Translations under genes and position numbers: made by a program
From: Klebsormidium nitens
Lineage: Eukaryota; Plantae; Klebsormidiophyceae
Assembly (NCBI GenBank): GCA_000708835.1
Contig: DF236950.1
Coordinates: 287,355-351,354 of the forward strand
Length of the DNA stretch: 64,000 bases
Direction: 5' to 3'
The notes under the pieces: generated by a model
What the model was told of the DNA's origin: nothing
Databases searched by the model: none
The model's input: only the letters and a program-made list of their open reading frames with translations
Part shown: positions 830-64,000 of the stretch, in pieces
How the letters are laid out: each line of letters starts with the position of its first letter
Position numbering within the stretch: the first letter of the stretch is position 1

Positions 830-3800
830 CTAACAGAAGAACATGGTTTCCTGTAAAGCTTCCTTGATCGCTGGCAAGCGGTATGCGGCCCGCCCGGCCT
901 CCCGGCGACCCGAGCTGCCGCTCGAGACGCTCCCCCGGTCGTTCTCCGCTGAGTCCATGTAGAACCGAGCCCGGAATGCCGCCAAGTGCGCGTAGTATGC
1001 TGGCGGGGCTGCGAAAATGTCCGAGAGGTAAGTAAGAGACTGTATTCAAAACCATGATGCTTGCGCTTTGCTTTTAGAACTCGAAACGAATTGGACGTAC
1101 AAACGCTCTATTGTGCATCCGACTAATGGAGTCTATCCCTTACAGGGCGAGAAACTCGACGCCTCGTTTGGTGGACGAGACGCAGTAGCCCCAGTCAAAC
1201 CTGCCTCCTTTCTGTCTCCTAGAACCAGTCCTTCAACGCTCTTATTCTTTCCTCAAACAACTCCCCTTTCATTCCAGCTTCAATGCACCCTCTGAAAGGC
1301 TTAGTCTGTCCAATCACCCCTACAAGACGCGCCCCATCTGTGCGCCTCAACCGGTGATGTTGTGATTGTTGCAGATATTACATTTCCAGAGGTTTCCCTA
1401 GGTGCGAAGTGCTTCTCACCTAGGGAAACGGAGCGCGTGCAGCGCGCGAACGTGTAGCAGAGGCTGTTGGTCAGGTCCTGGATGGCGTCAGCGGTGAACT
1501 TGTTCTGGTCGTACAGCACGTGGTAGTGGCACGGCCGCGACGTCCCCTGGACGGACAAACCGGAACGGAATGACACGGAACCAAGACAACGCCACCTAAA
1601 CAAGCGAAGCAAGCCTGGTATGGCACGTTGATGCAAGAGTGGGGCGAGAGGCGAAGAAGTAAGTGCGCCTCAAGAAGGGAGGGGGCCCTCGAGCAACGCT
1701 TAGGAAGACTCATCAAAGAACTGGCGATGACGAAATGTCAAAGCCACTGCGCCAGTGGATGCAAGCCTACCGTCAAGGTCACTGGGCTTCCCGTCGAGGT
1801 CATCAGGAAGCCCGTGACTTATCTCCGTTGTTCTCACCTTCAAGCCGGTGTGGCTGTTGAGATAGAAGTCGAACTGGCTGGGATGAGTGATCACCCGGTC
1901 CACCACAGTGCCTATACACGCAAGAGAGGCGAGCGCAGTTAAACTTCTAGACCTGCAAACACAGCTTCTATGCAGGGACTTTGCTCGAGCGACGAGTGTG
2001 GCACTCCCATGTTCTGGACAGCTTTGCGTCTAGTGTAGGATAACCTGCTTGCTGGGGAAAAGCCCCCGAATGCACAGCACTCTTTTCTTCCGACCTGCCA
2101 GGGACTTGCTCCGCTGCCAGTGTCTCTCACGATCGTCACCGCTGTGGAAAGTCGGTCGAACTTGGCACGAAGCTTCAACCCGGACTGCTCCAGCCAAAAA
2201 ATGGGCGGTAATTTTTGTGAACTCTTACCAGCGGGAATGTTTCCCGATCTGTCCGCCTGGCGCTCGTCGGCGCAGTACAGCCGCGTTTTGTGGCGCTTCT
2301 GGCATACAATCCACGTCACATTGGGCTTGTAGCCGGGCTCCAGCTTCGCACACGTCTGCAGACAGAAAACCCTCTGTTCCCGGACAGATTGCAATGCTTC
2401 TTCTCCGAAAGAAGCAAACAATGGAAGGCGCATTGAGCAGGGGGTGGTGTCAAGGCATCTAAGATCCGGGGTCGGCGGGCAACAAGTGAGAGACATGGCA
2501 ATACAGTAGAATAATGTATGCAAACGCGATAAGCACTCAGGAGGCTATGCCCTTCAACTTGACACTTCCTGAAGATTGCAAGACTTGGGCCTAAAGACAC
2601 AGTTCTCTCAATTCAAAGACCCCCGGGATACAAAGACTGGCTGCAAAACGGCGCTAGTACGAGCAATGAGTTCTGCTATCGCGCAAACGACATAATCGTG
2701 CAAAGGGGAGAATTGGCTCGGCCGCCTCCGTCAATGGCCTTCTGAGGGATTCTTTTTCTGAGTAAACGTTGCCGCCAAGATGCCAGGAGGAATAAGGCGC
2801 CGACGGTCAAAAGAAACAGGAGCAACGACCGGGAGGCACTTACCTTCCACAGCGCTCTGAGCTCGTGCAACAGCACCTGGTAAAACTGGCCCTCGCTGAC
2901 CCCGTCTCTGCAAAGCAAAAACTCGCGGCTCGAAGAGGCTCTTTCTGAGGTGCAGAAGCTGGCCCGTTATGGGGGTGGAAGAAGCTCGAACTGATCCGTT
3001 AGGAAGCGGTTAGGAACCACAGAGCACCACCTGTTGGCACGCACTGAGCATGCACTCATTGCCCTGAGCGTGTCTTAGACTCAAGTAGCATTGGATCCTG
3101 AGCACTTCCTTATTCGCCGCGCTCCTTAGACAGATCGAACCTTAGTGGACTGCAGCACCCGGACGTATGAGACCAAGCGATGTTCGAACAACAGCCCCCA
3201 ATTGCGAAAGCTTTGTCCCCAAAGCCTCGATGAATCGGAACCAGCAACGTCCAAACGATTGAGGCTCCAGATCAGAACAAGGGTGACCGAATAGGCTCAT
3301 CTTACCGGTACATGATGATCCTCTGGGGCTTTTGGCCCGTCTTCCGGTAGAAGGCTATCAGGTGATCCCTGCGGCACGAGAAACGTCACTCCCTAAAAAC
3401 GTCACTCTATGACGGAAGCTCCGCATGGTATGGCGAACATTTCTGAAGCGCGGGTCTCAGCAAACATGGTTTGCAAGGTTTGCAGGTCCTCGCCGCTTTG
3501 GAGGCTGTGCAAGCAGCAGCTCTTGCTTGAGGAGCTAGCTTTCTGGGTCCAGATTGTTTTTAGGGTCAGGGCAGATTCAACCGCCCTGCAGAAGGGACAA
3601 CAAGTCAACATTCCGGTACCGGACTTGCTCGACCGTTGGATGGGATTCTGGTTAGCACATCTGCGGAGTAAGGGGCACGGTCTGCTAGGAATATAAGCCC
3701 CTGCTTACCTGAACATGCCCTCGGCGTTCTGGATGATCTCCTCTGTGCCTGGCTGCGCGCTCACGAGTGCTTCGTAGCGGTTCACATACGGCCAGTCCTG

Positions 3801-6800
3801 GCTCGCCACGATCTGCAGTAATAGAAGCAGGGAAACACGGTTTGCCCCGGAGATCTCAAGAGACAAAATAAATCGAGATGGAACTCTGACCGCAAGGGCA
3901 AAGCGAAGGGAACAAGAAGCAGAAAAACCAGCCTTTATCGAGCAGAAATGAACGTGCTTAGAACTTAAGGACAATGAAATTTAGCAAGAGCAGGTTAGAT
4001 TGGATAAAGAGGCAACTCAAAGAGCATGTTGGCGTTTCAAGCGGCGAGTGCTCGGATGGCTGCCAAAGCGTCGCCGACTGGAACGTGAGCGGACCAGTGC
4101 ATATCCTACGGCTGCAGGAGCGAGAAAGATCAAGGGAAAGGTCAGGGGGCACGGGAAAATTCAATGAGAAGGTCAAAGAAGCGCTCACCGCCGCAACGGA
4201 GGTGCCCTCGTCCCTCTCGCCAGGCTGTGGGTGCTGCAGACAGAAGGTATCATTGCGCGTAAGACACCGTCGAAGAGTTGTTCTTGGGTCAGTGAAAAAC
4301 TCCGTCGTAAACATGTACATACATTTCGCTCCCTGGGCGATATCCCAAAGCGACCGAAAGGAACCGCTGCGAGTCAGGCCGCCAGCCTCCACCACAGTTC
4401 TTGGACGAAGGCAAATAGCAAACCGACTCCTGAGGCAAACCACAGCGATCTGCGGCTGACGCACCGTGACGTCAGCCCCGAAGATGATGGTGGGCACGTT
4501 GTCCTCGTTGATGAAGGGCAGCTTCCCTTGCAGCTCCTTGGACAGCAAATTGTTGATCGCGGGCGCCTCGCCGTCCCCGGCCTTCACCTGCGCAGTCACA
4601 AATATGTACCGCACCTGTCCAGTCTGTAACAATCTACACTTCTTTCATCATAGGTCAAGTGTGCAATTGAATGTAATTTTCCCCAGCTACATCTTCCCAG
4701 CTTTGAGTTTTGAACACGTTGATACGGTAATAAACTGGGTATGACCACTCTGCCTCCAGCTCCGGGCACCCCGTTCAATTCTCGAGCCAAACAAAATGAA
4801 GACACTCGCATCCATTCGCCAGTCAACGACAACTTAAACACTACAACAAAAATCTAGATTCAGTTCTCCGGCAGCCCAAAGCTGATGGTGGCAACGTTCG
4901 ATATATTGAGCATAAGAATCATCATGGGGCTCTTAAGGTGCAATCCTTTGTTTCTTACTTCGAGAATCGGCGCATTTAAAGAATCTTTTTCATTCGATTT
5001 CTCAACTCGCGGCACGGCGGATCATTGACCGGCCGATTTATAGCAATATCAGTCCTTGCCATTCTAGCCTGCCAAGATGTGCGGAGGGGAGTAGTCCCTG
5101 CTCATGCAACTCGAAACAAGCTTTCAGTTGCCACGAACTACAAACCGTGAATACTTCACCAGTTCGTGGGGAAAACAGACAGGCACGTTGACCGGACGCG
5201 TCCTTCTCCTGCATCACAAAGCACGCTCTAAGAAAATCGAAGTGGGGCGTGTTCTGGACGCGGACGTCCACACCGAGCTGTTTGCGCACCTTGACGTTGA
5301 TCTTGAGCACCACGTTTGCCAGGTACTGCGGGTCGCTCTTCTGGACGTGCCTCGCGAGGCAGCACTGCGTGACCACGCCAATTTCCGTCTCACACACGCG
5401 CTTCAACGTGCCTGCACGCACAGCAGCAACCGAAGGTACAGATGTCACCGTTTTTTCCTCGACCTTGGGTCTGTTAAGCCCCCAAACCCAACGGAAAGTA
5501 CGGGGCCAGCTGATGAATCAGGCACGAGCAGAACAGAAGCGACATCGAGACAAGACGGCCGGGGCAGTGCAGGGTCACAATTGCGACACCTCGTTGAGAA
5601 ATCGATGGCCCAAGCTTCGATTTCATGCAGAAGGTTATGCTCGGGTTTGTTGTAACGGATCCTTCACGCGAACGCCTAAGGACCGACCTTTACCCGCGAC
5701 AATGTGGCACTGATTGGTGGGTATGGTATGATATCTGGATCAACATCCTCCAGGCAGAAACTTGAGAGAAGGTGAATCGACCAACAGATCGAGTATTGAG
5801 GGTAAATCGAAACTACACGAAATAGACGGTCGTTCTCACCGTACGGCTGCGCCTCCTTGCTGGGAAAGACGCAAATGAGCAGCTGGAGGCCCTGGGGGTC
5901 CGTGCGGTGCGCCTGGCTCGTGACGGCCTTGAGCGCAGCCGTCATTTCGCGCGGGCTGGAGAAGGCGTTGTCGCCCACCAGCCAGTCCTCCACCGGCAGC
6001 AGCGTCGCGGGGTTCATGTTCTAGAGGACGACAAATTCGTGTGGGTTCGTGCGATCATTTGTAAGGAGATTTTCCTCGAGTAAGGTTTGCTTCGTGATTT
6101 GACACCCGTGCTCCGTGTTGCAACCAATACGTCGGCAGACTATCATCCGAAATTCCTGTACGGGAAGGACTTGGTTGGTTCGCTTGTTGGACAGTTTACT
6201 CTCGTGACCATGGGTTTTAGGGTGAGCCCATAGGTTTTAGTGTGAGCCCATAGGGTTTAGGGTGAGCGAGGGGATGCCAACAAGGGGGTCTGAGTCGTTC
6301 TTCGAGAAGTCTGCCAGTCAGAAAACAAGTTCAGGGAGCAGATACGCAGGAAGGCCAACGTTCTAGCCGCCAAAATCTTTGGCGCTCGTCAAAGACGGAA
6401 GTATCAAGTGAGTATCAGGTACTTAAACATTGATTACGGTCCTCACCATGCCCATCTCGTTGCACTTGCTGGCGAGCCTGGATGCGAAGTTGGCGACCGC
6501 GCTTTGCATCCTCCGGGACACGAACGACAGCACGGCCCATCGGTCGATGTTCACCCCCGAGTACAAGCACTGCCGCCAGGGCAAAACGGCATGACGTCAG
6601 CAGGGAGTACGGGTCCAGCCCAGCCTCGTATTTGCAGGAAAACCAGTCACCGACGTTCACATCTCAATCCAAAAGCCAAGTCATGAAGCGGGTTTCGAAA
6701 GAGCGCTCGAGAGAAGCCGCCCGTCTGGCAGGGCCTACGGTTCAGTAACTCAAAAAATACGCGTGTCGAAAGCCGCTCCTGCCGCGTCCTAGAGCGAATT

Positions 6801-9800
6801 AGACGACATCATTGGAGCCAATTGGTGCGGGCCCGCTTACTGTGCTCCTGAGGTTCCAGGCGCCGTCTCTCGGCTGATACAGCTTGTCCTTCTGGTTCAT
6901 CTCCTTGTAAACCACCTGCGAAGAGAAGCACAGCACAGAAGTCAGAGCTCGCACCTTGGAGAGGGCTGTTGCGAAGACACACACCAAGTTCGACGATTCC
7001 TTCTGAAAAATTTGTAAGGGGTTACGAAGCAAAAGACAGAAGTTTTTCAAAATCACTCTGACCCTAACACATTCATATGAAGACGTATATGTTTTGGACC
7101 TAGTCTTCAAGAGCAAAATGAGAGCCGTGAAACCCACGAAAGTGGAGCTTGCTAGGAGACATAGTGGAGCAAAGTGGAGCTTGCTAAGAAAAACACACTG
7201 AATCACGCAACACAGAGATGCATTCGTCCGGACCACTCGCAAGACTTCAGAGAAGATGCTGACGAGCTTGCACAAACGAAGCTTATTCCTTTTATTCCTC
7301 ACCGTGGGAGGATTGAGCACCCGGCCCGGCACATCGCTCATGTCCTTGCTGATCGTTAGCCCGAACTCGCGAGCATACTCGTCACGGCCGTAGTCGTTCC
7401 TGGCCACCATCTGCAAAAGGAGCAGAAGCGAAAGCATTGGCGCGAAGAAAGCACGCACGTGCACCTCTGAAAAAGCAAGAGCGTTGACGCTTGAAATGGC
7501 AAAGACCACCAACTTGGTATGAAGGACTTTTGCAAGCGCACAGGTTGGATGTCAATCTGACACCCTTTTAGATGCAAGACTTTGCTGACCAGTCCGTTGA
7601 CTTCGACTTTGGGGCACATAAAAACAAAAGCTTGAACCAACCAGAACACAGTCACCAGGCCTGCTCATGACATACTCTGTCCTGTGGGGAGAAGTCGACA
7701 AAAATGGAGCTGATATTCGGTACGTGACTCACGCTCTCGGTGAGGCGCTTCCGCTCTGCGGGCTTCTGTTGGACAATCCTGAGCAGCTCCAAGACCTGGC
7801 TGTCGCTCAGCTTGCGCGGGTACCGCTGACCGCCCACGATGCGGCACACCTGAAAGAAATAGACGGCCTGGCATGTTGCGAATTGACTCTACTAACTGAA
7901 GGCAAGCACACTTCGCTTCCTCTCAAGGCCTTATTTTGACTGGTAGTCTACGCACTTATCAAATCTGCAATCGGAGGCGACTGCGGCCACTGGCCGAGCC
8001 GATCGCCCTCAACTCTCGTCGACTTGATGAGGGAGCAATCGGATCTTAATCAAGAAATCCAAAGCGCGCCATTGGCCCCGCAGAGGCGTAACTTATGCAC
8101 CATTCTCTTCCTTAAAGGAAGTAGAAGAGGAGTTTGCAGAAGACTCGCTGCACCCATTCATTCCAAGACAAGCGATCGAGCAGAAACTTCAATCCAACCG
8201 GTAAATAAACCTTCCAACAAGTGCAAAAGGACTGAGTTTCGCAGTTGCTTACCTCCATGGGGATGAGGACATCCTTCTTGGCCCCCACCTCGAAGCACTG
8301 CAGGCCGGGGTGCCTGAGCCTGTAGTTGTAAGCCTGCAGGAAGTACCCCTCCACGGAGATCTCCTCGCCATTGTACAAGAACCTGAAACAGCGAGCAGCG
8401 TCAAGTTGCTTTCTGGTCGGCTGCTGATTGCTTGGAGTCTAGTTTTGTCATGGTCTTGAGCATAATGTGGGTTGGTTGATAGAGAAGTGAGAATTGATGA
8501 TCCCGACAAATAGGTGGTTCAAACATGTCTCTCGAGGCTCCAGTCGAAGAGTAGAAGCCGGAGGCGATTCTCATACAGAAGAGCAATTTGAGCAGCTGGG
8601 TCACACGTCAAACTACTCTTCACACGCGCTTAGTGAGCCTCTATCTATATCATCATTAGCCTCCAAGACAAGGTCGACAAACGCTTGACCGTCGTGGCCT
8701 CACTTGAGGTCCCTCGCCGCCTTGCGGGTGATCCCCATGATGCGGTGCCGGCGGCGCATCTCCCCGCGGTGGGTCACCTCGAAGCGCACGCCAACCAGGG
8801 CCTTCCCCAACTGAAAGGGACACCAAGCAATCATAAGAGTAGGTGAGTAACAAAGACAAAACGTCAACCACGATTGACAGCCCGGCTCAGATTGTTGGGG
8901 TTGGCAGGTTCAGCAGCACCAGACTTGAGCATTCCACTAACGGTCCTGTTTCACCAGGTCCCAAAGTATTGGCTTGCAGCGATCCTAACACGCAGAGACA
9001 AGCTAGCTGCTTCACCCAGGTTCGTAGCCCACCCCTGCAAAGTCAAAGGCGCCTTTGCAGCATCTTCGAGGATGGTGAAGGAAAGTGAATTTTGCCCCAC
9101 CTTGACCCTGTCTGCGTCTCCTAGGGTGGAACCGCTCCACCTGGGCACGACCTCCGGGATGTAGTCAATGACGTTGATCGGCTTGTGGAACGCGCTGGCC
9201 GACATGTCTGCAAACAAGGCTTCAGGTCGCTTCAAAAGCAGCACGCCGACTGTCAGCGAGCCATAAATGGATGGACAAACACTCTGCTTGTTCCGGAAGT
9301 TACTTGGTGCTCCAGTTACTCATATTCTGGACGGAATTTTCAAGGAAGCCTGTCTGCCTCCTGCTTTTCTCTTCCTCAGGAAAGGACTACTCAGGATAAG
9401 CTGAGTGGTTCTACAAAGTGCTGCGATCTTTCTTACCCAGGTTCAGCATGAGCCCGCCTTGAGTAGGCCGCATGCTCTGATAGTAGCCCCGCCACGCAAC
9501 CAAGCCTCCAGAGAGGTTCACAGGGCGGTCCACGTTCTCGTTGAAGAAGGAGCGCCCCACCAGTACATTCCTGCAAGGACACAGTCCGCTTAACAGCCTC
9601 GGGACTATCCTGAAAGATCGTCCCATCGAAGTAAGACGACTTTGCCCGAAAGGCCAAGGAGAGCCACAGTGAAGCCAATAACAGGAGACACCTGTACGCA
9701 TTTCTGCATGATGCTTGATTCTCGCAACGAATCACCTCATGCGACTTCCTTGGCAACACTTCAAGCGAACGTCGGAGCACCGTCAAGCGAGCAAAAAGTG

Positions 9801-11954
9801 CAAGTGAGACTTATCCAGTACTGACGTGCTTATGATCCTCGAACTGTCACAACTAAGCGCGTATTGTCTGAAAGATTTGGCAAGTTGAGAGGGCTTACGA
9901 AAGCAGCGCCATTTCCCGCATCACAATGTCGAGCACTTGGATGGACGTCTGAGGAAGCTCCAACGACCTTGCTTCAAGGAAGCGCTGCAGCGAGGGAGAC
10001 GAGGTCAAACAGGTTGAGATTATGATAGATCAAAATAGAAGATTATGCTTGCATCTGTTTCTGCACTGGTACAGACAGAAAACATGTCAACATGCCCTGC
10101 CTGCATATACCGGTAGCAAGGAGACTGAAACGCAGATGGTGTCACCTACCTTAAAGGACTCCATGTTGATGTTGGCTACTATCGACAGCGTGACCTTGAA
10201 TCTTCTGAGCTCCCTGCAATCAAACTTTGATTTGAGAAACTTTTAGAAATGAAACGTTCCCCCTACTGAGGCTTGTAATCAGGAAAGAGGACGTGACTTC
10301 TTTTTGATTGATGGAAGAGAATATCAGATCAGAGTTGGTAAAGTACGAAGATATACCTTGCAGGCTGCCCAGGCGGCGGAGGGGGCAATGGCACCTCATC
10401 GGGGGGAGTGATGTCAGTGAACTCCCGGGAATGGAACGGCAGGGGCCCTGCGAGTGAGATAGTCAACCATACAGTGCTTCGTACACTCATAAAATGATCA
10501 AAGTTCACTTTGAGACACAAGCAATAGAGAATGGATGTGCAACCTGAAAGACTCTCCAGCAGATCTTGAAGGCACAAAAGCATGTCGATTGGCTAGAAAT
10601 CCCTACTGACAAGTGAGAGAAATGAAAACCCTAAATATAAAAACCCTAAATAAGAAAACACTTCAAGCTTGCGAACTCCTCACTTGCTGTGTACAGGCTC
10701 TTGCTTCCGTCGAAGGTGGGGAGTGCGTTTGCCAGGGTAGTGCTCCTGTGCGTCCGAACAAGCTCTCTGATCACAGCGCGGCGGATGGCTGTCTTGTCCG
10801 TGTCGGGACTGATGACAACCTGACAGACAAAGCCAGGGATATTCTCAATGTCCCTTGAACAGTCTGAGATATCTGCAGGTTGATCTGAGCAGTTGCACTC
10901 TATCAATGGCCAAAATGAAACTGTGGTTTTTCAAAGGAACAAATCAAGCACAGAAGTTGCTCAAAGATAGGAAGCTACAGCAAACATTTTAGAATGTAGT
11001 TGCTGTTAACATTTGAGGAGTCCTTTGGTTGGGGCAGCCAGCCAGAGGAAGTGGGAGATTGTTCACTTACATCATAATGGAAGAACGTCTCTTTGGAGCA
11101 GGCGGCCTTGAAGAAGTTAGCCTGCACAGCAATCAGAGTTGCCCAAGAGCGACTCAGATGCTGCATGAGTCACCTGACAGAAGTGCTGTTGAAAAGGGGG
11201 GGGTACGCTTTCAGCAATGAATTTTGCTCTTCATCTCCTTTACATGCGTGCTCTGACATGATAGTGGTCAAGCACAACCGACATATCCTGAGAAGATCGA
11301 TTGACGCACCTTCAAGTCGACCCGCCTTCCAAGCGTCCCAAAGCCCGGTCGAAGCGCCGGTTCGATATCCTTCCCCGTCGTCGGCTGCATAGTCGTGCGA
11401 GGTGTCCCCGAGCTCTCAGCCGCACTGCCAGCCCCGGATTGCTCCTTCAACTGAAGCTTCCCAATGCCTTGCGCCGCAGTCACTTCCGCTGGCAGCATCA
11501 CCCGCAGACTGGGGGCGCTAGGCTGCTGTGGGGGCCTAGGCCCTACTGGCGCACCTGTGGCAGGGGTCGCTGCCTGAACAGGTGGCCTGGGGCCTAGCGG
11601 GTTGTAGGCCGGGCGAGGGAGCATTGCAGGCCCGGGGGAGCCTGCTGGCCTGGCCCCCACCGGCTGCTGAACCTGTGGCGGTGCGCCATTGAACCCCGGG
11701 GGGGGCGTTACAGTGCCAGCGTCTGCGGGGGGTGCTCCTTGCTGAGGCCCAAGCAGAGGAGGGGTGTAAGCCCGAGGCGCGCGTGAGGGAATGCTGCGAA
11801 TGGAGGCCGACGAATTGCTTTGGGACAATGGTGGGGCATAAGGGCCTACCACTACTCTCCGAGGTGGGGCAGGGGGGCGGGGTGCATTGTCCTGCTCATC
11901 GGTGGGTGCGCTGCCACCAGAGGCCCTGCCAGCTCCCTTCTTCTTTGGGCCCAT
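830..11954 (-). CDS. AGO: Argonaute protein (eukaryotic AGO; N-ext, N, L1, PAZ, L2, MID, PIWI), about 25 exons
   Basis: Spliced exons read ANFF..HYD (11070-11120), [55 protein letters not shown] (8252-8384), and [34 protein letters not shown] (5301-5412). PIWI exons read [59 protein letters not shown] and [24 protein letters not shown] (TAG 830-832). Junctions checked are GT-AG and keep frame. Start taken as MGPKKK (ATG 11954); an in-frame upstream start is possible. Confidence 0.97.
1392..1429. repeat. 13-bp perfect inverted repeat spanning the donor site of the last AGO intron
   Basis: GTTTCCCTAGGTG (1392-1404) is the reverse complement of CACCTAGGGAAAC (1417-1429). The exon/intron border lies between 1420 and 1419. 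Confidence 0.95.
6204..6267. repeat. 20-bp tandem repeat (~3 copies) with telo-box-like and site II-like motifs in an AGO intron
   Basis: GTGACCATGGGTTTTAGG / GTGAGCCCATAGGTTTTAGT / GTGAGCCCATAGGGTTTAGG / GTGAGC. The minus strand reads AAACCCTA-TGGGCT. Confidence 0.85.
7139..7187. repeat. 16-bp direct repeat AAAGTGGAGCTTGCTA x2 in an AGO intron
   Basis: Two exact copies are visible in the sequence; function unknown. Confidence 0.7.
10625..10652 (+). repeat. Duplicated telo-box AAAACCCTAAATA x2 in AGO intron 3
   Basis: Exact 13-mer at 10625-10637 and 10640-10652, each containing AAACCCTAAA. Confidence 0.8.
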
Positions 11955-12355: not shown

Positions 12356-12375
12356 NNNNNNNNNNNNNNNNNNNN
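12356..12375. other. Assembly gap (20 N)
   Basis: Run of N upstream of the AGO start. Confidence 1.
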
Positions 12376-16700: not shown

Positions 16701-19700
16701 AGCTGCTGGATCACGCCGGGCTGGCACAAGAGCGGATCGAGCGGAATGAGCGGAATGAGCGGAAGGAGCGGGGCGAGCTGAGCGAAATAAACGTCGCACA
16801 TCTCGTCGAAGATGACTCCGACCATGCGGTTTACGGCACTGTCCTCTAAGCAGAGAGCAAATATCTGCAGACTAACGAAGTGTATCCTCCTCCAAATTTT
16901 GCGAAACTGCCTCTCCGTGTGCAGGCCTCACATAGCACGGCAATCGATCAACCAAGAAAGTGCCAGAAGCGGCGAAAGTGCCTTCGAAACTTGGAGTTAT
17001 GCAGATGGTAACTTACCTGTTTCAATAGAAACTGGCTCGGCTTTTCTAGGATTGCTCGATGCATTAGCGCGCTGCGGTGCACGTAATCAATGGACTTCTT
17101 GACGTCTTCATAGACGTACCTGCAAGAAAAGCGTAAGAAGTACTGGACGTGAACAGCGGCAAATGCGAAAATTGGCCATTTTTGGAAAGACGTCACTTTC
17201 ATTGAGCGATGCACCACAAACTCTCTTTGGAGTTTGTCCCAACCCTTGAGCCAGGAAATGAAAATGGACGTTGAAACATGGACTCACAGAAATCCAGCCT
17301 GACCTGGGCAGGAAACTCGATCAGATCTCGCTTTTAAGTTCGAAAAAGACCCCTTGCCCTGTTGTCAACATTCCGGTAGTTGAGACGGGGAATTTTGAAC
17401 GACTTTCTGACTCAGCGGCTGACTCAGCGGACGGGTATGAAGAACTTACATGGGGTCGAACTCGATGCGGGAAGAAACGAAGTGCTGTATAACGTCCGAT
17501 ATAAGACAGGCCTGCGGAAGATCGTACGAGTCGTTTAAAGTTGCCATGATATAGTGGTATGTGCGACGCAAAGAGCACGAGACGACCGATCGAGAGGACG
17601 ATAATCCAAGACTCTTGTAGGTTTTCGAATAAGCTCTGAAGCACTGACATGAGGTACACACCAGAACAAGTTGACATTGGTCGTTTGCACTCCTCCAACG
17701 AGAACTCTACGTCTCCAAGGCTCAGAATGCGTCTCCAGCTTTACTGATAAGGCAAAGCCGCCGTTGGCATCTTAAGAAAAGGCCGCCTGCTTTATAACGG
17801 CAAAGACTTCAAGCTCGTACCTCGGACAAGCAGAAGAGGTCCATCAGCGAGACGAGGTTGTGCATGTAGTCGCTCGGGATGGCCTGCCGCCCGTATGCTT
17901 CCTCGATCTCCTGTCGTGACAAGGCGCGACGGCCAAAGTAGGCGGCGCCCGGCTCAACCGCGTGGAAGAAGTCTAGCTTTAAAAGATAACCCTGAAGACA
18001 AGAACGCTGGATTCAGTTGACTGAGTTTCAATTGAAGCAGACAGGCAAGGAACTAGTGTTCCCCAAATTGCTAAGTTCAAAGGTAGGTTGTTAATGAGTC
18101 CTCATACTTACTGTGAGCCTGCAAGGTGATCCAATCAGAAACCGGCTAAAGAGGCCAGGAGGCTGGTAGATGGCATCACAGGTCTATCGTTTGATTAATC
18201 GGACTGAAACGGCTTCTGTGGAGATAGCAGCTTTCGGGGTGCCGCTTCAAACAATGACACAGATGCTCGGTGTCTCCAGAGGCATTTCTTCATACTAGCG
18301 ACTCTTGATGCGTTGTCGAGCAAATTAAGAGCCGTGGTGTAAAGTCCTCATGTTGCAAATGAAGGAAAGTAATTCTTACCCGTCGTTTGTCATAGTAGAG
18401 GCCCCTGATGGGGAACTTTTCGTCGTATCGGAAGCTGAGTATGTCTCGAGGGTATCGAAACTGCGAAAAGCAGATACAATTGAACGTGAGATGCTCCAAA
18501 CAAGAAGACAACGTTATGCAACGGCTTTGTCAGGAGCTCCGAATCAACCTTCTATCTCCAGTCGGAATATCGTTCCACGATGTACACCAATAATATCTAA
18601 AAGGTCATCCGAGAGTCACAGCACGACTATAAAAGAGTGCCAGAAAGTGGTAAAGCTCACTTTCACGTCAAAAGGCCTAAAGTGAAAACGAATGGTGCCA
18701 AGCTTACCTCTTTGACGAGGTGATGGACAGCGAGATTGTAGATGAGCGGCTGCAGATGCTCAGTATAGTGAGCGATAGTGTAGTCGTAGTCAAATCCGTA
18801 CACTGAGATCTGATCCAGCCGCAGCGAGCGGTTCGGGTAGATGGCTGCACCAGGCAGATACTTCGTGAACACCTTTGCAAAAGGATGACGCCTTGAATGC
18901 GTGACACTCAGAAAGATGCCCTCTTGCAAATGATGGCGCCTTACAGTGACATTAGAAATAAATGTACCATTGCAGGTCGGCTAGGATCCACTGTTCCCCG
19001 ACCATGCAAAAAGTCCGTTGATAAGTGTCCAGGGAGGTGATCGAACCGGCAAAGACTCGTCAAGGGCAAGTGCAGGAGAATCACTGCACTTACCATTGCA
19101 GCTTCTTCAGAGGTTTGATGATTCCAGCAATTAGTGTCTGTGTGCAATGAGTGTCCTTTTCACTCCGCCTGACGCAGCATCATCAACTTGAAAGTCAATC
19201 GAACGAAGTAGGTCTGAAAAATCGAGGAGGGCCCACCGGTCCGCGTAGTGTGTGATCAGGCTATGCCAATCTTAGAAATTGTGATGCAGGCTAGAAAAAG
19301 GACTTTGAAACTTTGAGGGATGTTGCGACTGTTGCTAAGCAAATGCGTCAGTGTGCCCGTCTCTGACCCGCCTCACCAGAGGGATTCATCAGGGGCGTAC
19401 TGCTCAGCGGCAGCCCCTGGACAGCTTGTGCCGCTTCAAACGCGTCTCGGAGTTGCCGAAGCCCCTCCAGAACTGCCCCGGTACTCTGTCTGCCTTGCGA
19501 GTAACCTCCCCCCCAGGCCGGCCCAGATTTCGCCCCCGCTTCTAGTTGTTCTCCCTTTTGAGAATGGCTGGATGCTGAGCTATTTTCACCTGATGCTTCA
19601 GCGGCTTCGACGTCATGCAATATCAGATCTTCCAACGCAACGCGGTCGCTCAGTTCTGACACTTCCTCGGAGGCGGCATGTTCGAATCGCTCTCTGCCGG

Positions 19701-20559: not shown

Positions 20560-21558
20560 ATCGTCTGAAAGAATGGATCATCTCTGGATTTGAAATAATC
20601 AATTCAGTACACGCACATTGCAGGCGATCACCAATGCAGATTTGGATGAAAGTTGTCACGAAACGGGACCTTAGGCTTTGAGATCTTCATTAGCGTCTGA
20701 ACAAGGTACTCAAGAACTCAGCATTTGGAGGCGTTATGGACTGCTTGGAGTAGGCCCGAGCTACCGGTACTGCAGCAGCTAGGCTTGCAAGCTGGAGCAG
20801 TGTAGTCTGCGAGATGAGTGAGACAACTTGAAGTTGAAGTGGAGAGCAGAGCTAGTGGCAGTGCGCTGATTCTGAACCAGAGCGGCGGTAGATCCATGCA
20901 AAGCTAGCTGCTGCTGACTCTGAGTCTGAGTCTGAGTCTGGCCTGGGCAACCGGACTACTGGCATTCACCAGCCGAAACAGCGCCGGCCGACTTCCGAGA
21001 GTCTCGGGCACGAGCTGTCTACTCTCGACGGTCAAGAGTTGTCCTGAGTCAATGAAGGTAACAACCAGGGCGGCTCTGGTTGACACGCGTCAGATGGGAG
21101 GAAGCAGAGTCAGCCCTTTAGCCAGCCCAGGAAGTTGCCAAGCTGGCACTTGCTGCAGCATTGGCATGCAGCTGGTACGGCCATGGCGGCCATTCCGGAG
21201 AAGAATTGGTGAAGACAAGGGCGCAGACGTATGTGCAAACGAGGAAAAGTGCATGAAAAAGCTCCTCCTCGTTTGCAGTAGGTAGGCACTGTCAGGAAAG
21301 TGACAAGAACTTACAGCTGCCAGAACTTACGGCTGCCCACAAAGGGCCTTCAAAATTTTGTAAGGAGGAAGGGTGAAAGAAGCTGCAAGTAACTGGCAAC
21401 TTTGATTTCGTGAAGGTGAAGAGTTTCCTTCATAAGGTTGCGGACATAGGTTCTGCTCCTGTTCTGCTTGTCGTTGTGGCATTGTGATTGGCAAGATCTC
21501 ATAGAGCTGGACCGGGTGCGGTACAGATCTCAGCAGCTCTCTTTGAGAACTCTGTTCT
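20560..21558. promoter_or_regulatory. Divergent (head-to-head) promoter region between the nucleotidase and UGT80 genes; contains a (CTGAGT)n microsatellite at 20914-20940
   Basis: Start codons at 20559 (-) and 21559 (+) face away from each other about 1 kb apart. Promoter function is inferred from position only. Confidence 0.6.
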
Positions 21559-24500
21559 ATGATGGCAGGGAGTGTGGGACACAACGCACCTACTAAAAAA
21601 GCAGAGGAGGAGTCACCTATTCCCCCCAATGCGACATTGTCTGAGCTGATTGGTGGGACGCCCTCAGAGTTTAGTTCTGGTGAAGGAGGAGGGGGTCCCN
21701 NNNNNNNNNNNNNNNNNNNNNNNNNNNNNNNNNNNNNNNNNNNNNNNNNNNNNNNNNNNNNNNNNNNNNNNNNNNNNNNNNNNNNNNNNNNNNNNNNNNN
21801 NNNNNNNNNNNNNNNNNNNNNNNNNNNNNNNNNNNNNNNNNNNNNNNNNNNNNNNNNNNNNNNNNNNNNNNNNNNNNNNNNNNNNNNNNNNNNNNNNNNN
21901 NNNNNNNNNNNNNNNNNNNNNNNNNNNNNNNNNNNNNNNNNNNNNNNNNNNNNNNNNNNNNNNNNNNNNNNNNNNNNNNNNNNNNNNNNNNNNNNNNNNN
22001 NNNNNNNNNNNNNNNNNNNNNNNNNNNNNNNNNNNNNNNNNNNNNNNNNNNNNNNNNNNNNNNNNNNNNNNNNNNNNNNNNNNNNNNNNNNNNNNNNNNN
22101 NNNNNNNNNNNNNNNNNNNNNNNNNNNNNNNNNNNNNNNNNNNNNNNNNNNNNNNNNNNNNNNNNNNNNNNNNNNNNNNNNNNNNNNNNNNNNNNNNNNN
22201 NNNNNNNNNNNNNNNNNNNNNNNNNNNNNNNNNNNNNNNNNNNNNNNNNNNNNNNNNNNNNNNNNNNNNNNNNNNNNNNNNNNNNNNNNNNNNNNNNNNN
22301 NNNNNNNNNNNNNNNNNNNNNNNNNNNNNNNNNNNNNNNNNNNNNNNNNNNNNNNNNNNNNCAGAGTTTAGTTCTGGTGAAGGAGGAGGGGGTCCCGGGG
22401 CGGCAGTTGCAGGCGTCGCCGCGAGTGGCTACGAAAGTGCTAAGTTGCCTGAGAGTTTGATCAGCGGTGCGAAGCAGGCTGCTCGCGAGTCCAAGGCCGA
22501 CGAGAACAAGGACGTTACCCCTGTGCCTGAGCAACCCCCTAGCCAGCCTGCGACTTTCTCCGACGCCGTGCCATATATCACCACACCCCTAGAAGCTCAG
22601 ACTGCCCCCAACGGGACGATGGCAGGGGACCCCAAGGCTGAGCTGGCGGCGGTGCCGGAGGGGATCCCACTTGCAAACGGTCAGGCGACAGGGATGCAAC
22701 TGGCAAGGCCTAAGCTGCAGCGGTCAGAATCGAAGATGGTGTCGGCGGTCAAGAACTGGAAGAAGGGAACAGAAAGGGTGAGCTGTTCATTCATGTGCTG
22801 AGTCTTATTGCTGAGGGAGGAAAGTGAAGTCTCTTGCAGGCTTTGTCTTCCCCAATGTGAAATGCCATAAAATGGACTTTTGTGTAGAAATGGCTCCCTG
22901 ATGACCAGGCATCAAACACACCAAGTCAGTGGTGTATAGCTCTGGGTCTTCATAAAGAACGTGCTTTCAAATGTAGCGGACTCTTGTCGCTTGGTTTTCC
23001 CTACACGCAGCGCCTCCTCAAGTTGTTCTTGTGGTGGAGCTGTACTTTCTAGGAGAAAGTTTGCGAACTTGGAAGAATCTGCACGATCAATTCTCACATT
23101 TTTCTTGTCTTGATTCAGATTTGGGGGGCATTTTCAAAAAAAGAGGTTTTCCCCGAATTGGGCGCCTTTTCAATGTATCTTTTCTTCTAAGTACCTGTTT
23201 TGTAACATGTTCAAAGTAACCAAGTGATGACAACATTACGCCCTTTTTGTGCGATTGCTTACAACTATCAGTAGATCTGGTTACTACAGTCCTTGTGTCT
23301 GGGCAGCATTTACTGATCTCTGTGGTTAGTTGTCTGAAGGAACCGCTTCTACTTGAAGAGCACGGGATCTTTACATCTTTCATCTTTCGCCCTGATCTTA
23401 CCCAAACACATTGTTGTCTCGACGCTTGTTCCTTAAACACCCATTCTCTTAAGCACTGATACCTGGGGCAGACGCATATTTCTATCTTTTGCTCTTAAGC
23501 CATCTTGGCTTTCAAGCGATATCAAAACCACATTTTCTCTTTAAAAAGGTATCACATTCTAAAGATGTCAGGGTTTCTCGCTTCCCAGGCGAAGATCCTC
23601 AAGAGGCTGGCGGCAGGGGCAACAGTTGCAGATGACTACGGGGTCTACTTTGACGATAAGAACCTGTCCAAGCACCACAACTTTGATGAGACGGATCAGT
23701 GTCAGTGGACCAGGCCGCAGTACGAGACGCTCAACGACGGCATGTGCCAGTCCCTCAGCATCTGCATCATGATTACTGGAACCCGGGGGGACGTGCAGCC
23801 GTTTGTCGCCATCGGACAGAAGCTCAAGGTACGGCGCCGGAACAACTTTATCTGCCAGGGTTGATTCCAAGTATTTCTGGGATATACAAATCGTCAAATC
23901 AAGCTGTTCAAGTCTGTGCAAGCTAGGTAAATTCGGCTGCACCAAGGATATGGTTCTTAAGGATCTGAGCCTTATCAACTCTCATCTGGCGGAGCAAGCA
24001 TTTGTGATTTATACACAGCAGGGGCGCCTCCTTAGCTAACCACTCTGGTTGACCTGCAGGAGTATGGTCATCGGGTGCGTTTGGCAACACATTCCAACTT
24101 CCGCGACTTTGTTGTCAAGGACGGGGGCCTTGAGTTTTACCCGCTAGGTGGAGACCCGAAGATCCTGGCCGCATGTGAGTGGGGAAGCTCGTTCATCTGG
24201 AGGCTGATTCCTTTCATCCACCGACTCGGCCAACAAGCATTTGCTTTGGACACATTGATTGCACATGTTTCAACCAATCGAAGGCCCCGTTTCTATCTTC
24301 GAAAGCAGTGTCGGCTGTTTCCTGAAGTGAGACAAGTGTGTGTTCACGCACTTGACGATCCTTATTGGTCGGCCAATCATCATGCAAGTCGTACTTCGAG
24401 AGTGTCCAACACGTCGTCACGCCTGTTCCATCCTTTTAACTCTTGGTTGCCGAAGCTTCGGAAGGCGCTTAACCTTATCGCTGCGGTTATCCAAAATCGC

Positions 24501-34941: not shown

Positions 34942-36585
34942 TTGCACAACCGCCAGGTTAGGATCAGATTGAGTGTACAGTGGTGTTGCTCGTCGAAGTA
35001 GAGTTCACGTCGTCCGCCCTGCTAGCAATTTTGCTCACATGCCACGCTGTTCCGACACATAAATGGTTGTATCGTTTTCGAGACACAGGCTAGAGCTAGG
35101 CATTGCCTTCCCCTCCTTGCGTTGTCAGGTTTTTCGTTGTAGCTGCGCTGGTTGATGAGACGTGTGTGGAGGTAGTTGCAGGACAATCAGGCAACCATTG
35201 TGAGTCCGCACCCAGGTAGACTAGAAAGCAAAGGTGTACTTTGCAAGCTTTAGTTTTTCCTGCAATCGAAGGTCTACCCCTACTTCTTTTCAACCTCGTC
35301 CCCGCACACACTTTTGCAGCATGCTTTCAGCTATTTTCTACATGAAATGCATCAGACTTAGAGTTTGAGTCTCGATCAACGGCACCCCCGTACTTCTCTG
35401 CGATGATCATTGTGACATGTCTTCGAAGACATGTCACAATCCGATAAACTGTTGAGATGCGGAGCTCTAATCTGCTTCCGTGCGGTGTGGTTCTTCCTCT
35501 GTACTTCGCGTGCGGGGCATGAATCTGGTCTGATGTTTAGTAGTCTGCAAATGTGCAATAAATCTACGATTCCTTCTCATCATCATGTTGAAAGACCTGA
35601 GTGCTCACGTTCGAGTGGCTTGATTTGTCGACGTTTTCGAGTTCTAGCTCGAGCTCGTGAGATTTCATTTGAGCAGAATGTTGTGACGTCCTTGACAACC
35701 ATCATACATCTTGCTTCAGAGGAAAAATGATGCACGAGAACGGCTGTCCCCATGCTGCTTCTAGCAATGCATTCTGGTGGTTGCTCCAGACTTGCGAAAG
35801 GGGACCCATGGGCGACTCATCCTAGCTCAAGGCTTCGTATCACACTTACGGCCCCGGGCGCGGGCCCGTTTCAATATTTTCATGGTCGATGAGTCCCAAT
35901 TTGTTTTGATTCTGAATGACTATAGAACATGACTTACTGCTGGCACACGACAATCTGGCGTAGTATCAAAATGCACGCTTGATTATGTCCATATAGCGAC
36001 GGTAGCTACGAATCTACATCGCAGTTGCCTGTGCGTGAAATTATTACATGTGCACCGTCTATCCATGGCGGCAGGCAATTATAGTATCTTTTATTAAGTT
36101 TGAAATTTGGGCGTAGTGACATGCAGTGACGCATGAGGCATGTCTAGTCATCGGTCCAAGTCGATCAGTTCAAGCTGGTGACATGCTATGTGGTTCTAAC
36201 TGCCCGCGGCATGCCGCCTGAGGAGCTAGTATGTCCTCATACATGTCACGTGTGCACCAGGGTGGCCGGCCGAACTTATGTGTGCGAATGCAAGCCTAAA
36301 GTTTTCTCAATCTTGTGTCGACCTGAACAAAACTAATACGCAGATTGCCAAGCGCGAGCATTGCAAGTCCGTTGTTTCTCGAACAACCCAGACCACCAAT
36401 AAATACTCCCAATTGCCAACGTTCTTGTGTCAAATTGTCCAAGGTAGACTCTACCTAAGCAAGCACGACTATCCTATTCTCATCAATACATAGAGTGCGA
36501 TTATACCAGAGGCGCAAGCCCCACTTTGACTCGGCACAACACTTTCGGACTCAACCATCTGCAAACATGCAGTAAGTACGTTCTC

Positions 36586-63202: not shown

Positions 63203-64000
63203 GATTTGCATCGTCTGTTTATTGTTCTGTAATTGTTTCATTTCACTGGGTTGATCGAAAAAGCTACCAGACGTATCCAGATTGGATTGTGTGCATTGAG
63301 TGCAGTACTCGATTCTAGGCGCCTGCGCATTCGACACTGCCAGTTCAAGCTGCATTTGTCGGCGCGGCAGATTGATTGGTCTCGTACTGAGGTGCCTGTG
63401 ACTTTCCTATAGATAGTCGTATCATTGAATCAGTTCGTAAGTCGACAGCAGCAGGCGGCAGGGCGGCTCAGTACTTATTCGCCATCTCTGTAGATGAGTA
63501 TGTTATCAAACGTCCTGGCAGAGGCCCGCTAGGCGGCTAGGAATTCTCAATCTGGTTCCACTGTGCTTACATACAACCATTCTGAAGTCCGGCGCGCTGT
63601 TAGTGTTGACCATTGTCCGGCAAAGCACATATTTGTGCCCACAATCGAGACCACTTTATCCAGCAGATTATTCAGGGCCCTACTACTAGTGTTTAGTAGT
63701 GCCAAAATTTTGGTATGGCCGCGGGCGGCCCTGTGACACACGGGCCGGTCGCAGCCGCATCGTGCCGCCGTAGAACATTGTACCAATCAGCCTTCAAGCT
63801 AGCAATATATGCCGAATCAAGCCGTGATGACATATGTACTGAGGCCCCTAGCTCAATCGAGACGCGACCAGTCATGAGACGTGTGTATACTTCAATATCA
63901 TACGTATGTAACTAGCAGTCGCGGATCAAGTGCGCACTGCCATGGCAACTAATCAGATGTTTCCGTAATTTGGGTACGGTAACATGAGCGGCCCATGGTC

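Follow-up and report, generated by a model that had tools for sequence, protein, structure and literature searches.

A strong predicted hairpin on the last 5' splice site of a Klebsormidium nitens Argonaute gene

Local structure in a pre-mRNA can compete with U1 for a 5' splice site, as it does in the stems of MAPT exon 10 and SMN2 exon 7 (TSL2). Splicing was reportedly blocked in Nicotiana protoplasts and in yeast when artificial hairpins of 18-24 bp were placed over a 5' splice site, in work attributed to Liu et al. 1995 (EMBO J) and Goguel et al. 1993 (MCB). Land plants are also known for feedback within RNA silencing, through the miR168-AGO1 loop and the intronic miR838 hairpin of DCL1. 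Attenuation of a 5' splice site by a stem-loop is established for murine leukaemia virus (PMC2794156), and plant pre-mRNA hairpins with an embedded 5' splice site are described for 45ABC of the RBP45 genes, GRP7/8 and PTB2 (PMC13485355). Hairpins that sequester splice sites are an already-known kind of element.

In the 64,000-nt stretch of Klebsormidium nitens DNA analyzed here (the window), the last donor of an Argonaute gene is predicted to lie in such a hairpin. Like 45ABC and the GRP7/8 and PTB2 elements, this is a green-lineage hairpin that holds the U1 motif in the gene of an RNA-binding regulator, and unproductive splicing would lead to a premature stop. Those elements, however, are conserved across many species and act on an alternative site, with 45ABC mutationally tested, whereas the Argonaute stem covers a constitutive donor and is predicted from sequence. 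As with the viral stem-loop, a local structure would compete with U1 and set efficiency, but the viral, MAPT and SMN2 stems are shorter or weaker (few to ~8 bp) and tunable, while the Argonaute stem, with 16 pairs and about -24 to -29 kcal/mol, would resemble an off state more than a rheostat. The artificial hairpins from Nicotiana plumbaginifolia and yeast are said to be similar in length and position (13-24 bp over the donor, short loop); they were engineered, whereas the Argonaute gene is natural and must be spliced. The likeness to miR168-AGO1 and miR838-DCL1 is that of a silencing gene with a cis element able to limit its own output, but those systems act via small RNAs, whereas the stem described here is too short for Dicer-like processing and small RNAs are not indicated.

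The gene at 830-11384 is an intron-rich, minus-strand Argonaute. The features needed below are as follows.

830-11384, minus strand: Argonaute gene, traced extent; 21 exon pieces from homology, collinear with full-length plant and algal Argonautes
1547-1837, minus strand: preceding intron, 291 nt; also contains a hairpin, bulged, at 1777-1820 (sequence, folding)
1420-1546, minus strand: penultimate exon, 127 nt, Piwi domain (GTSRP...CTRSVSL; homology)
1392-1429, minus strand: near-perfect palindrome, 38 nt; as RNA, a hairpin with a 13-bp stem, then an A/G mismatch (1x1), three more pairs and a GCAC loop (sequence, repeat finding, folding)
1417-1429, minus strand: 5' arm, made up of the 10 exon bases before the junction (Val, Ser and Leu codons, then base 1 of the split codon) and of intron +1 to +3 (sequence, repeat finding)
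1414-1422, minus strand: donor core, -3 to +6, TAG|GTGAGA (opening cost and U1 duplex model)
1392-1404, minus strand: 3' arm, intron +16 to +28, exact reverse complement of the 5' arm (sequence; 13-mer unique in the window)
1009-1419, minus strand: last intron, 411 nt, GT..AG (sequence; overall structure unremarkable, z -1.0)
1301-1303, minus strand: first in-frame stop on retention, after Leu and 39 intron-coded residues (reading-frame translation)
830-1008, minus strand: last coding exon including the stop (830-832), aligning to human AGO2 802-858

The homology work was done per exon, with exons searched singly rather than as a joined spliced protein. Nineteen collinear exon pieces cover a 979-aa plant Argonaute from residue 109 to 979 and a Chlorokybus Argonaute from residue 59 to 877; identity to land-plant Argonautes is only ~50%. 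Pfam Piwi is matched by four exon pieces, among them the penultimate exon (1546-1420, Piwi positions 239-283), and the motifs GADVT and RDGVSEGQ are found in the exon pieces. Over its full length, the last exon (1008-833) aligns with Arabidopsis AGO10 929-988 and human AGO2 802-858, and the residues aligned to human AGO2 His807, of the catalytic tetrad, and Arg812 lie in it, as does the C-terminal MFFC. The predicted protein thus has the Piwi domain, catalytic residues and conserved C-terminus of the AGO clade, an N-PAZ-MID-PIWI architecture that appears complete from the collinear exon pieces, and the features of a canonical DEDH-type Argonaute. Runs of N, which are scaffold gaps, lie at 12356-12375 and 21700-22361.

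The last-intron donor reads CTAG|GTGAGA, with final exon base 1420, and the acceptor ...tttcgcag|CC, with the last exon beginning at 1008; the codon split across the junction (G|CC) is Ala. On the Chlorokybus Argonaute, the penultimate-exon piece maps to 780-821 and the last-exon piece to 823-877, leaving a gap of exactly one split codon, and therefore no donor other than the exon end at 1420 fits. With the donor fixed in this way by homology, the stem appears to contain the U1 site of a 5' splice site that is in use. A candidate rescue donor, GTAATA just 3' of the stem, was rejected because it is in phase 0 while the acceptor requires phase 1. The codon at 1421-1423 on the minus strand is Leu (CTA) in an RSVS-I/V/M motif where most homologues have Ile; its C sits in the palindrome, and the substitution and the palindrome could have a common origin.

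The original prediction of a perfect hairpin on this donor, with a stem from -10 to +3 and a further 3 bp at +5 to +7, matched our analysis in every detail. A repeat finder returned inverted arms of 18 nt each (1392-1409 and 1412-1429), 17/18 complementary and separated by a 2-nt spacer. On the minus-strand RNA, -10 to +3 (1429-1417) pairs perfectly with +16 to +28 (1404-1392), +4 A stands opposite +15 G as a mismatch, +5 to +7 (1415-1413) pairs with +12 to +14 (1408-1406), and GCAC (1412-1409) forms the loop. Donor positions -10 to +7, that is most of the U1 site, are within the hairpin, and all 16 pairs are Watson-Crick with zero G-U. The folding check that had been proposed also predicts the stem: the 66-nt fold around the donor has an energy of -33.1 kcal/mol (z = -5.9; 0/200 shuffles as stable), and when 121 to 712 nt are folded, the 13 stem pairs have mean pair probabilities of 0.95-0.99. 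The structure is clearly more stable than its local background, and the intron at 1009-1419 folded as a whole showed no unusual structure. The hairpin alone is at -24.4 kcal/mol at 37 C and -29.1 at 25 C; on heating, the same fold is intact at 65 C (-13.2 kcal/mol) and still at -9.3 at 75 C.

The opening cost calculated for the last donor core (-3 to +6) was 17.5 kcal/mol at 37 C, rising to 20.3 at 22 C. For the 17 other homology-placed donors of the gene it was 1.1-8.6 kcal/mol, so that the last donor is at twice the next highest. It is also the most sequestered among 68 donor-like NG|GTRAG sites in the window (-25.5; runner-up -20.8), and along the gene its fold ranks at the 1.3 percentile among folds of 65 nt, a level that only this donor and one other (d14) reach among the 18. 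Given a modelled U1 duplex of -9.5 kcal/mol against the opening cost of 17.5, U1 would not be able to compete at equilibrium. Three further donors (d03, d13 and d14), however, also have modelled opening costs above their own U1 duplex energies, which indicates that this plain thermodynamic comparison predicts too much inhibition. As a class, the donors of the gene have no extra structure relative to the gene background (Mann-Whitney p = 0.56).

Several other structured sites were seen. At d14 (4440-4478, minus strand; ACG|GTGCGT, exon end 4465), the catalytic G-A-D-V codons pair over 9 bp with intron +3 to +11, with the junction in a 6-nt loop. In the preceding intron, the hairpin at 1777-1820 (minus strand) has 14 bp with one bulge and ~-26 kcal/mol, and as it spans +19 to +58 from the donor 1838|1837 the donor is left uncovered. 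Elsewhere in the window, an 11-bp hairpin at 19068-19098 (minus strand, -20.8 kcal/mol) encloses a donor-like ATG|GTAAGTGCAG, with an ORF resembling a 5'-nucleotidase domain protein (18663-18929) downstream of this putative donor hairpin.

Retention of the last intron stays in frame to a stop at 1301, as originally proposed; translation reaches 1301-1303 after 39 residues. The claim that the lost segment carries the catalytic His and the C-terminus also held, since retention removes the exon aligned to human AGO2 802-858 with His807, Arg812 and the C-terminus. A retained last intron has no downstream junction, so EJC-type NMD is not expected, leaving only a long-3'UTR route or nuclear retention. 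Decay of the retained transcript would accordingly go via a 3' UTR ~470 nt longer, or nuclear retention would take its place.

The intron itself is old, as its position and phase are common to three distant Argonaute loci (L001, L002 and L036) and to plant genomic read-through fragments. A comparable stem was not found at those three loci, where the best local dG was -9.5 to -14.0 against -25.5 here. With three distant loci sharing the position but not the stem, the stem is probably lineage-specific and younger than the intron. L001 is an unannotated, GC-rich eukaryotic Logan contig (SRR23617307, 18.7 kb) whose Argonaute has the donor G|GTCAGC at the same position and no hairpin. Searches for close orthologues returned distant relatives. 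A word search with the penultimate exon and the intron tail gave distant plant fragments only; a metagenome scan gave 39 Argonaute loci, all at <=81% identity in a very conserved exon; and a representative-sequence search with the last exon gave a best match of 67%, all matches being land-plant, Chara, Chlorokybus or Logan models. An alignment query with scaffold and exon pieces gave angiosperm AGO5 relatives only; this query is insensitive, as in simulation it ranks the K. nitens protein below thousands of plant Argonautes, even with the Chlorokybus scaffold. Exact look-up of three ORFs of the window gave no record.

As a sequence, the donor stem is non-random. It had been estimated that such a stem would arise by chance with a probability of ~0.03, and dinucleotide shuffles agree, giving 0.035 perfect stems of at least 13 bp (loop <=40 nt) per shuffled window. 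The real window, however, holds 2, so a hit on a donor is less improbable than that figure suggests. Perfect stems of at least 11 bp likewise number 4 against 0.6 expected from shuffles, and short perfect palindromes in the window are 6- to 50-fold above dinucleotide shuffles. In a 44-nt scan of both strands, the last-donor hairpin is at about the fifth most stable locus of the window. If the 2 palindromes per 64 kb are set against the 1-2 donors that each kb of genes like this one contains, chance alone would place a few per cent of palindromes on a donor (a rough estimate rather than a computed value), and in a genome of ~100 Mb there would be, again roughly, dozens of palindrome-covered donors by chance. 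The location on a donor is for this reason notable, not compelling. A GC-rich hairpin of -30 kcal/mol was also seen at 63713-63760.

Most likely the palindrome was born by DNA-level inverted duplication through a template switch, not by slow shaping at the RNA level. This is indicated by the Watson-Crick-only pairs, the 2-nt spacer, the exact inverted copy of coding and donor sequence, and the palindromes elsewhere, which include a perfect 32-nt palindrome at 35409-35440, a 12-bp hairpin with a 20-nt loop at 21234-21277, and the hairpin at 1777-1820. Short template-switch (quasi-palindrome) mutations are alike in their perfect adjacent inverted copy, tiny spacer, Watson-Crick pairs and local excess; here the event is putative. 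A repeat or transposon origin was considered and rejected, the 13-mer of the arm being found nowhere else in the window. With 1 mismatch in 18 positions, the event was either recent or its product has been maintained.

The explanation we prefer, and hold with about even confidence, is that an incidental and recent, lineage-specific, near-perfect 38-nt palindrome slows splicing of the last intron constitutively. Under this scenario, a template switch would have placed a reverse-complement copy of the exon end plus donor within the intron, at a distance of 12 nt downstream. The 3' arm would be transcribed 12-28 nt past the donor, and the hairpin would close once +28 leaves the polymerase, burying -10 to +7; over so short a distance from donor to 3' arm, it can close almost as the donor emerges. 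U1 would then bind only before the 3' arm emerges at the polymerase exit or after a helicase has opened the stem. Removal of the last intron would as a result be slowed or partly fail, constitutively, and some transcripts would retain the intron, either giving a truncated protein without the catalytic His or being kept in the nucleus. The expectation of inhibition comes from the artificial-hairpin experiments. The effect in vivo could be small, since U1 carried on the polymerase may catch the donor before the stem forms (10.1101/2020.10.19.344200). Moreover, a functional protein needs the last donor, and because the coding sequence looks intact and conserved, splicing must succeed reasonably often. 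No indication was found that the effect is regulated.

It is possible, with a lower probability than constitutive slowing, that the palindrome is a mutational by-product without measurable effect, U1 capture or helicases coping with the stem so that the intron is spliced like its neighbours. The abundance of short perfect palindromes in the window (2 of at least 13 bp, 4 of at least 11 bp) is consistent with this, as are the few per cent of palindromes that would cover a donor by chance on the rough estimate above, the lack of added structure in the donor class relative to the gene background (p = 0.56), and a gene that appears intact and conserved. Against it, the opening cost of 17.5 kcal/mol is far beyond the range of the other donors, and comparable artificial stems are said to stop splicing in plant cells and yeast.

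A selected switch, in which a helicase, a dsRNA-binding protein or temperature would set the ratio of productive to retained transcripts and so provide a feedback on silencing, appears unlikely. The exact position of the stem, its extreme stability for the gene, and a retention product that would be dead or lost all fit a switch, and plants do have conserved hairpins with a 5' splice site inside them in genes for RNA-binding proteins that regulate themselves (45ABC, GRP7/8, PTB2; PMC13485355). However, three distant Argonaute loci do not have the stem at this junction, the stem has no G-U pair or other mark of RNA-level shaping, and the donor it sequesters is constitutive rather than alternative. 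In addition, K. nitens has several Argonautes, two of them AGO1/5/10-like (PMC7994812), and with more than one Argonaute in the alga a switch at this gene alone would not toggle all silencing. The temperature-driven form that had been suggested is disfavoured. An RNA thermometer melts within the temperature range of its organism, whereas this stem, in the model, stays folded below ~75 C and is too stable for melting at physiological temperature. Slightly less probable still is a more specific version, in which selection would have made the stem a gate for the last intron of an Argonaute that is competent as a slicer. Exposure of the donor would be decided by a helicase in the nucleus or by a factor that binds dsRNA, perhaps one with its own link to silencing, and Argonaute output would be set at splicing in a lineage that maybe lacks the miR168 loop of land plants.

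We consider it very improbable that the hairpin is a signal unrelated to U1, such as a site at which an RNase III-like or dsRNA-binding protein would single out unspliced transcripts to be cleaved, or the precursor of a small RNA. Precedents exist in the cleavage of unspliced pre-mRNAs by yeast Rnt1p, the hairpin of the DGCR8 mRNA and the intronic miR838 of DCL1, and there is a weak Rfam match to a miRNA family. That match (mir-587) scores 26.3 bits against a gathering threshold of 80 and reflects only a generic hairpin, the loop is not AGNN, the remainder of the intron is unstructured, and 16 pairs are too short for Dicer-like processing; a known RNA family or microRNA precursor was rejected on the score and the stem length. 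Least probable of all is that an error of assembly or sequencing produced the palindrome, or that it is private to the strain sequenced, since for all the N runs in the scaffold the palindrome is inside a contiguous, in-frame, homology-supported gene with the gaps far away, and its exon arm codes for the expected residues.

Constitutive slowing by a recent palindrome remains the reading we prefer. If the intron is spliced normally, the locus would be mainly a caution that strong palindromes hit splice sites by chance. If the stem forms in vivo, K. nitens would provide a natural plant-lineage gene whose indispensable constitutive donor lies in a hairpin of roughly the same strength as the artificial hairpins that abolish splicing, and splicing of the last intron would reveal to what extent such structures yield to co-transcriptional U1 capture or helicases. 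If retention is also condition-dependent, an early-diverging streptophyte would have a control of Argonaute dosage that acts at the level of splicing.
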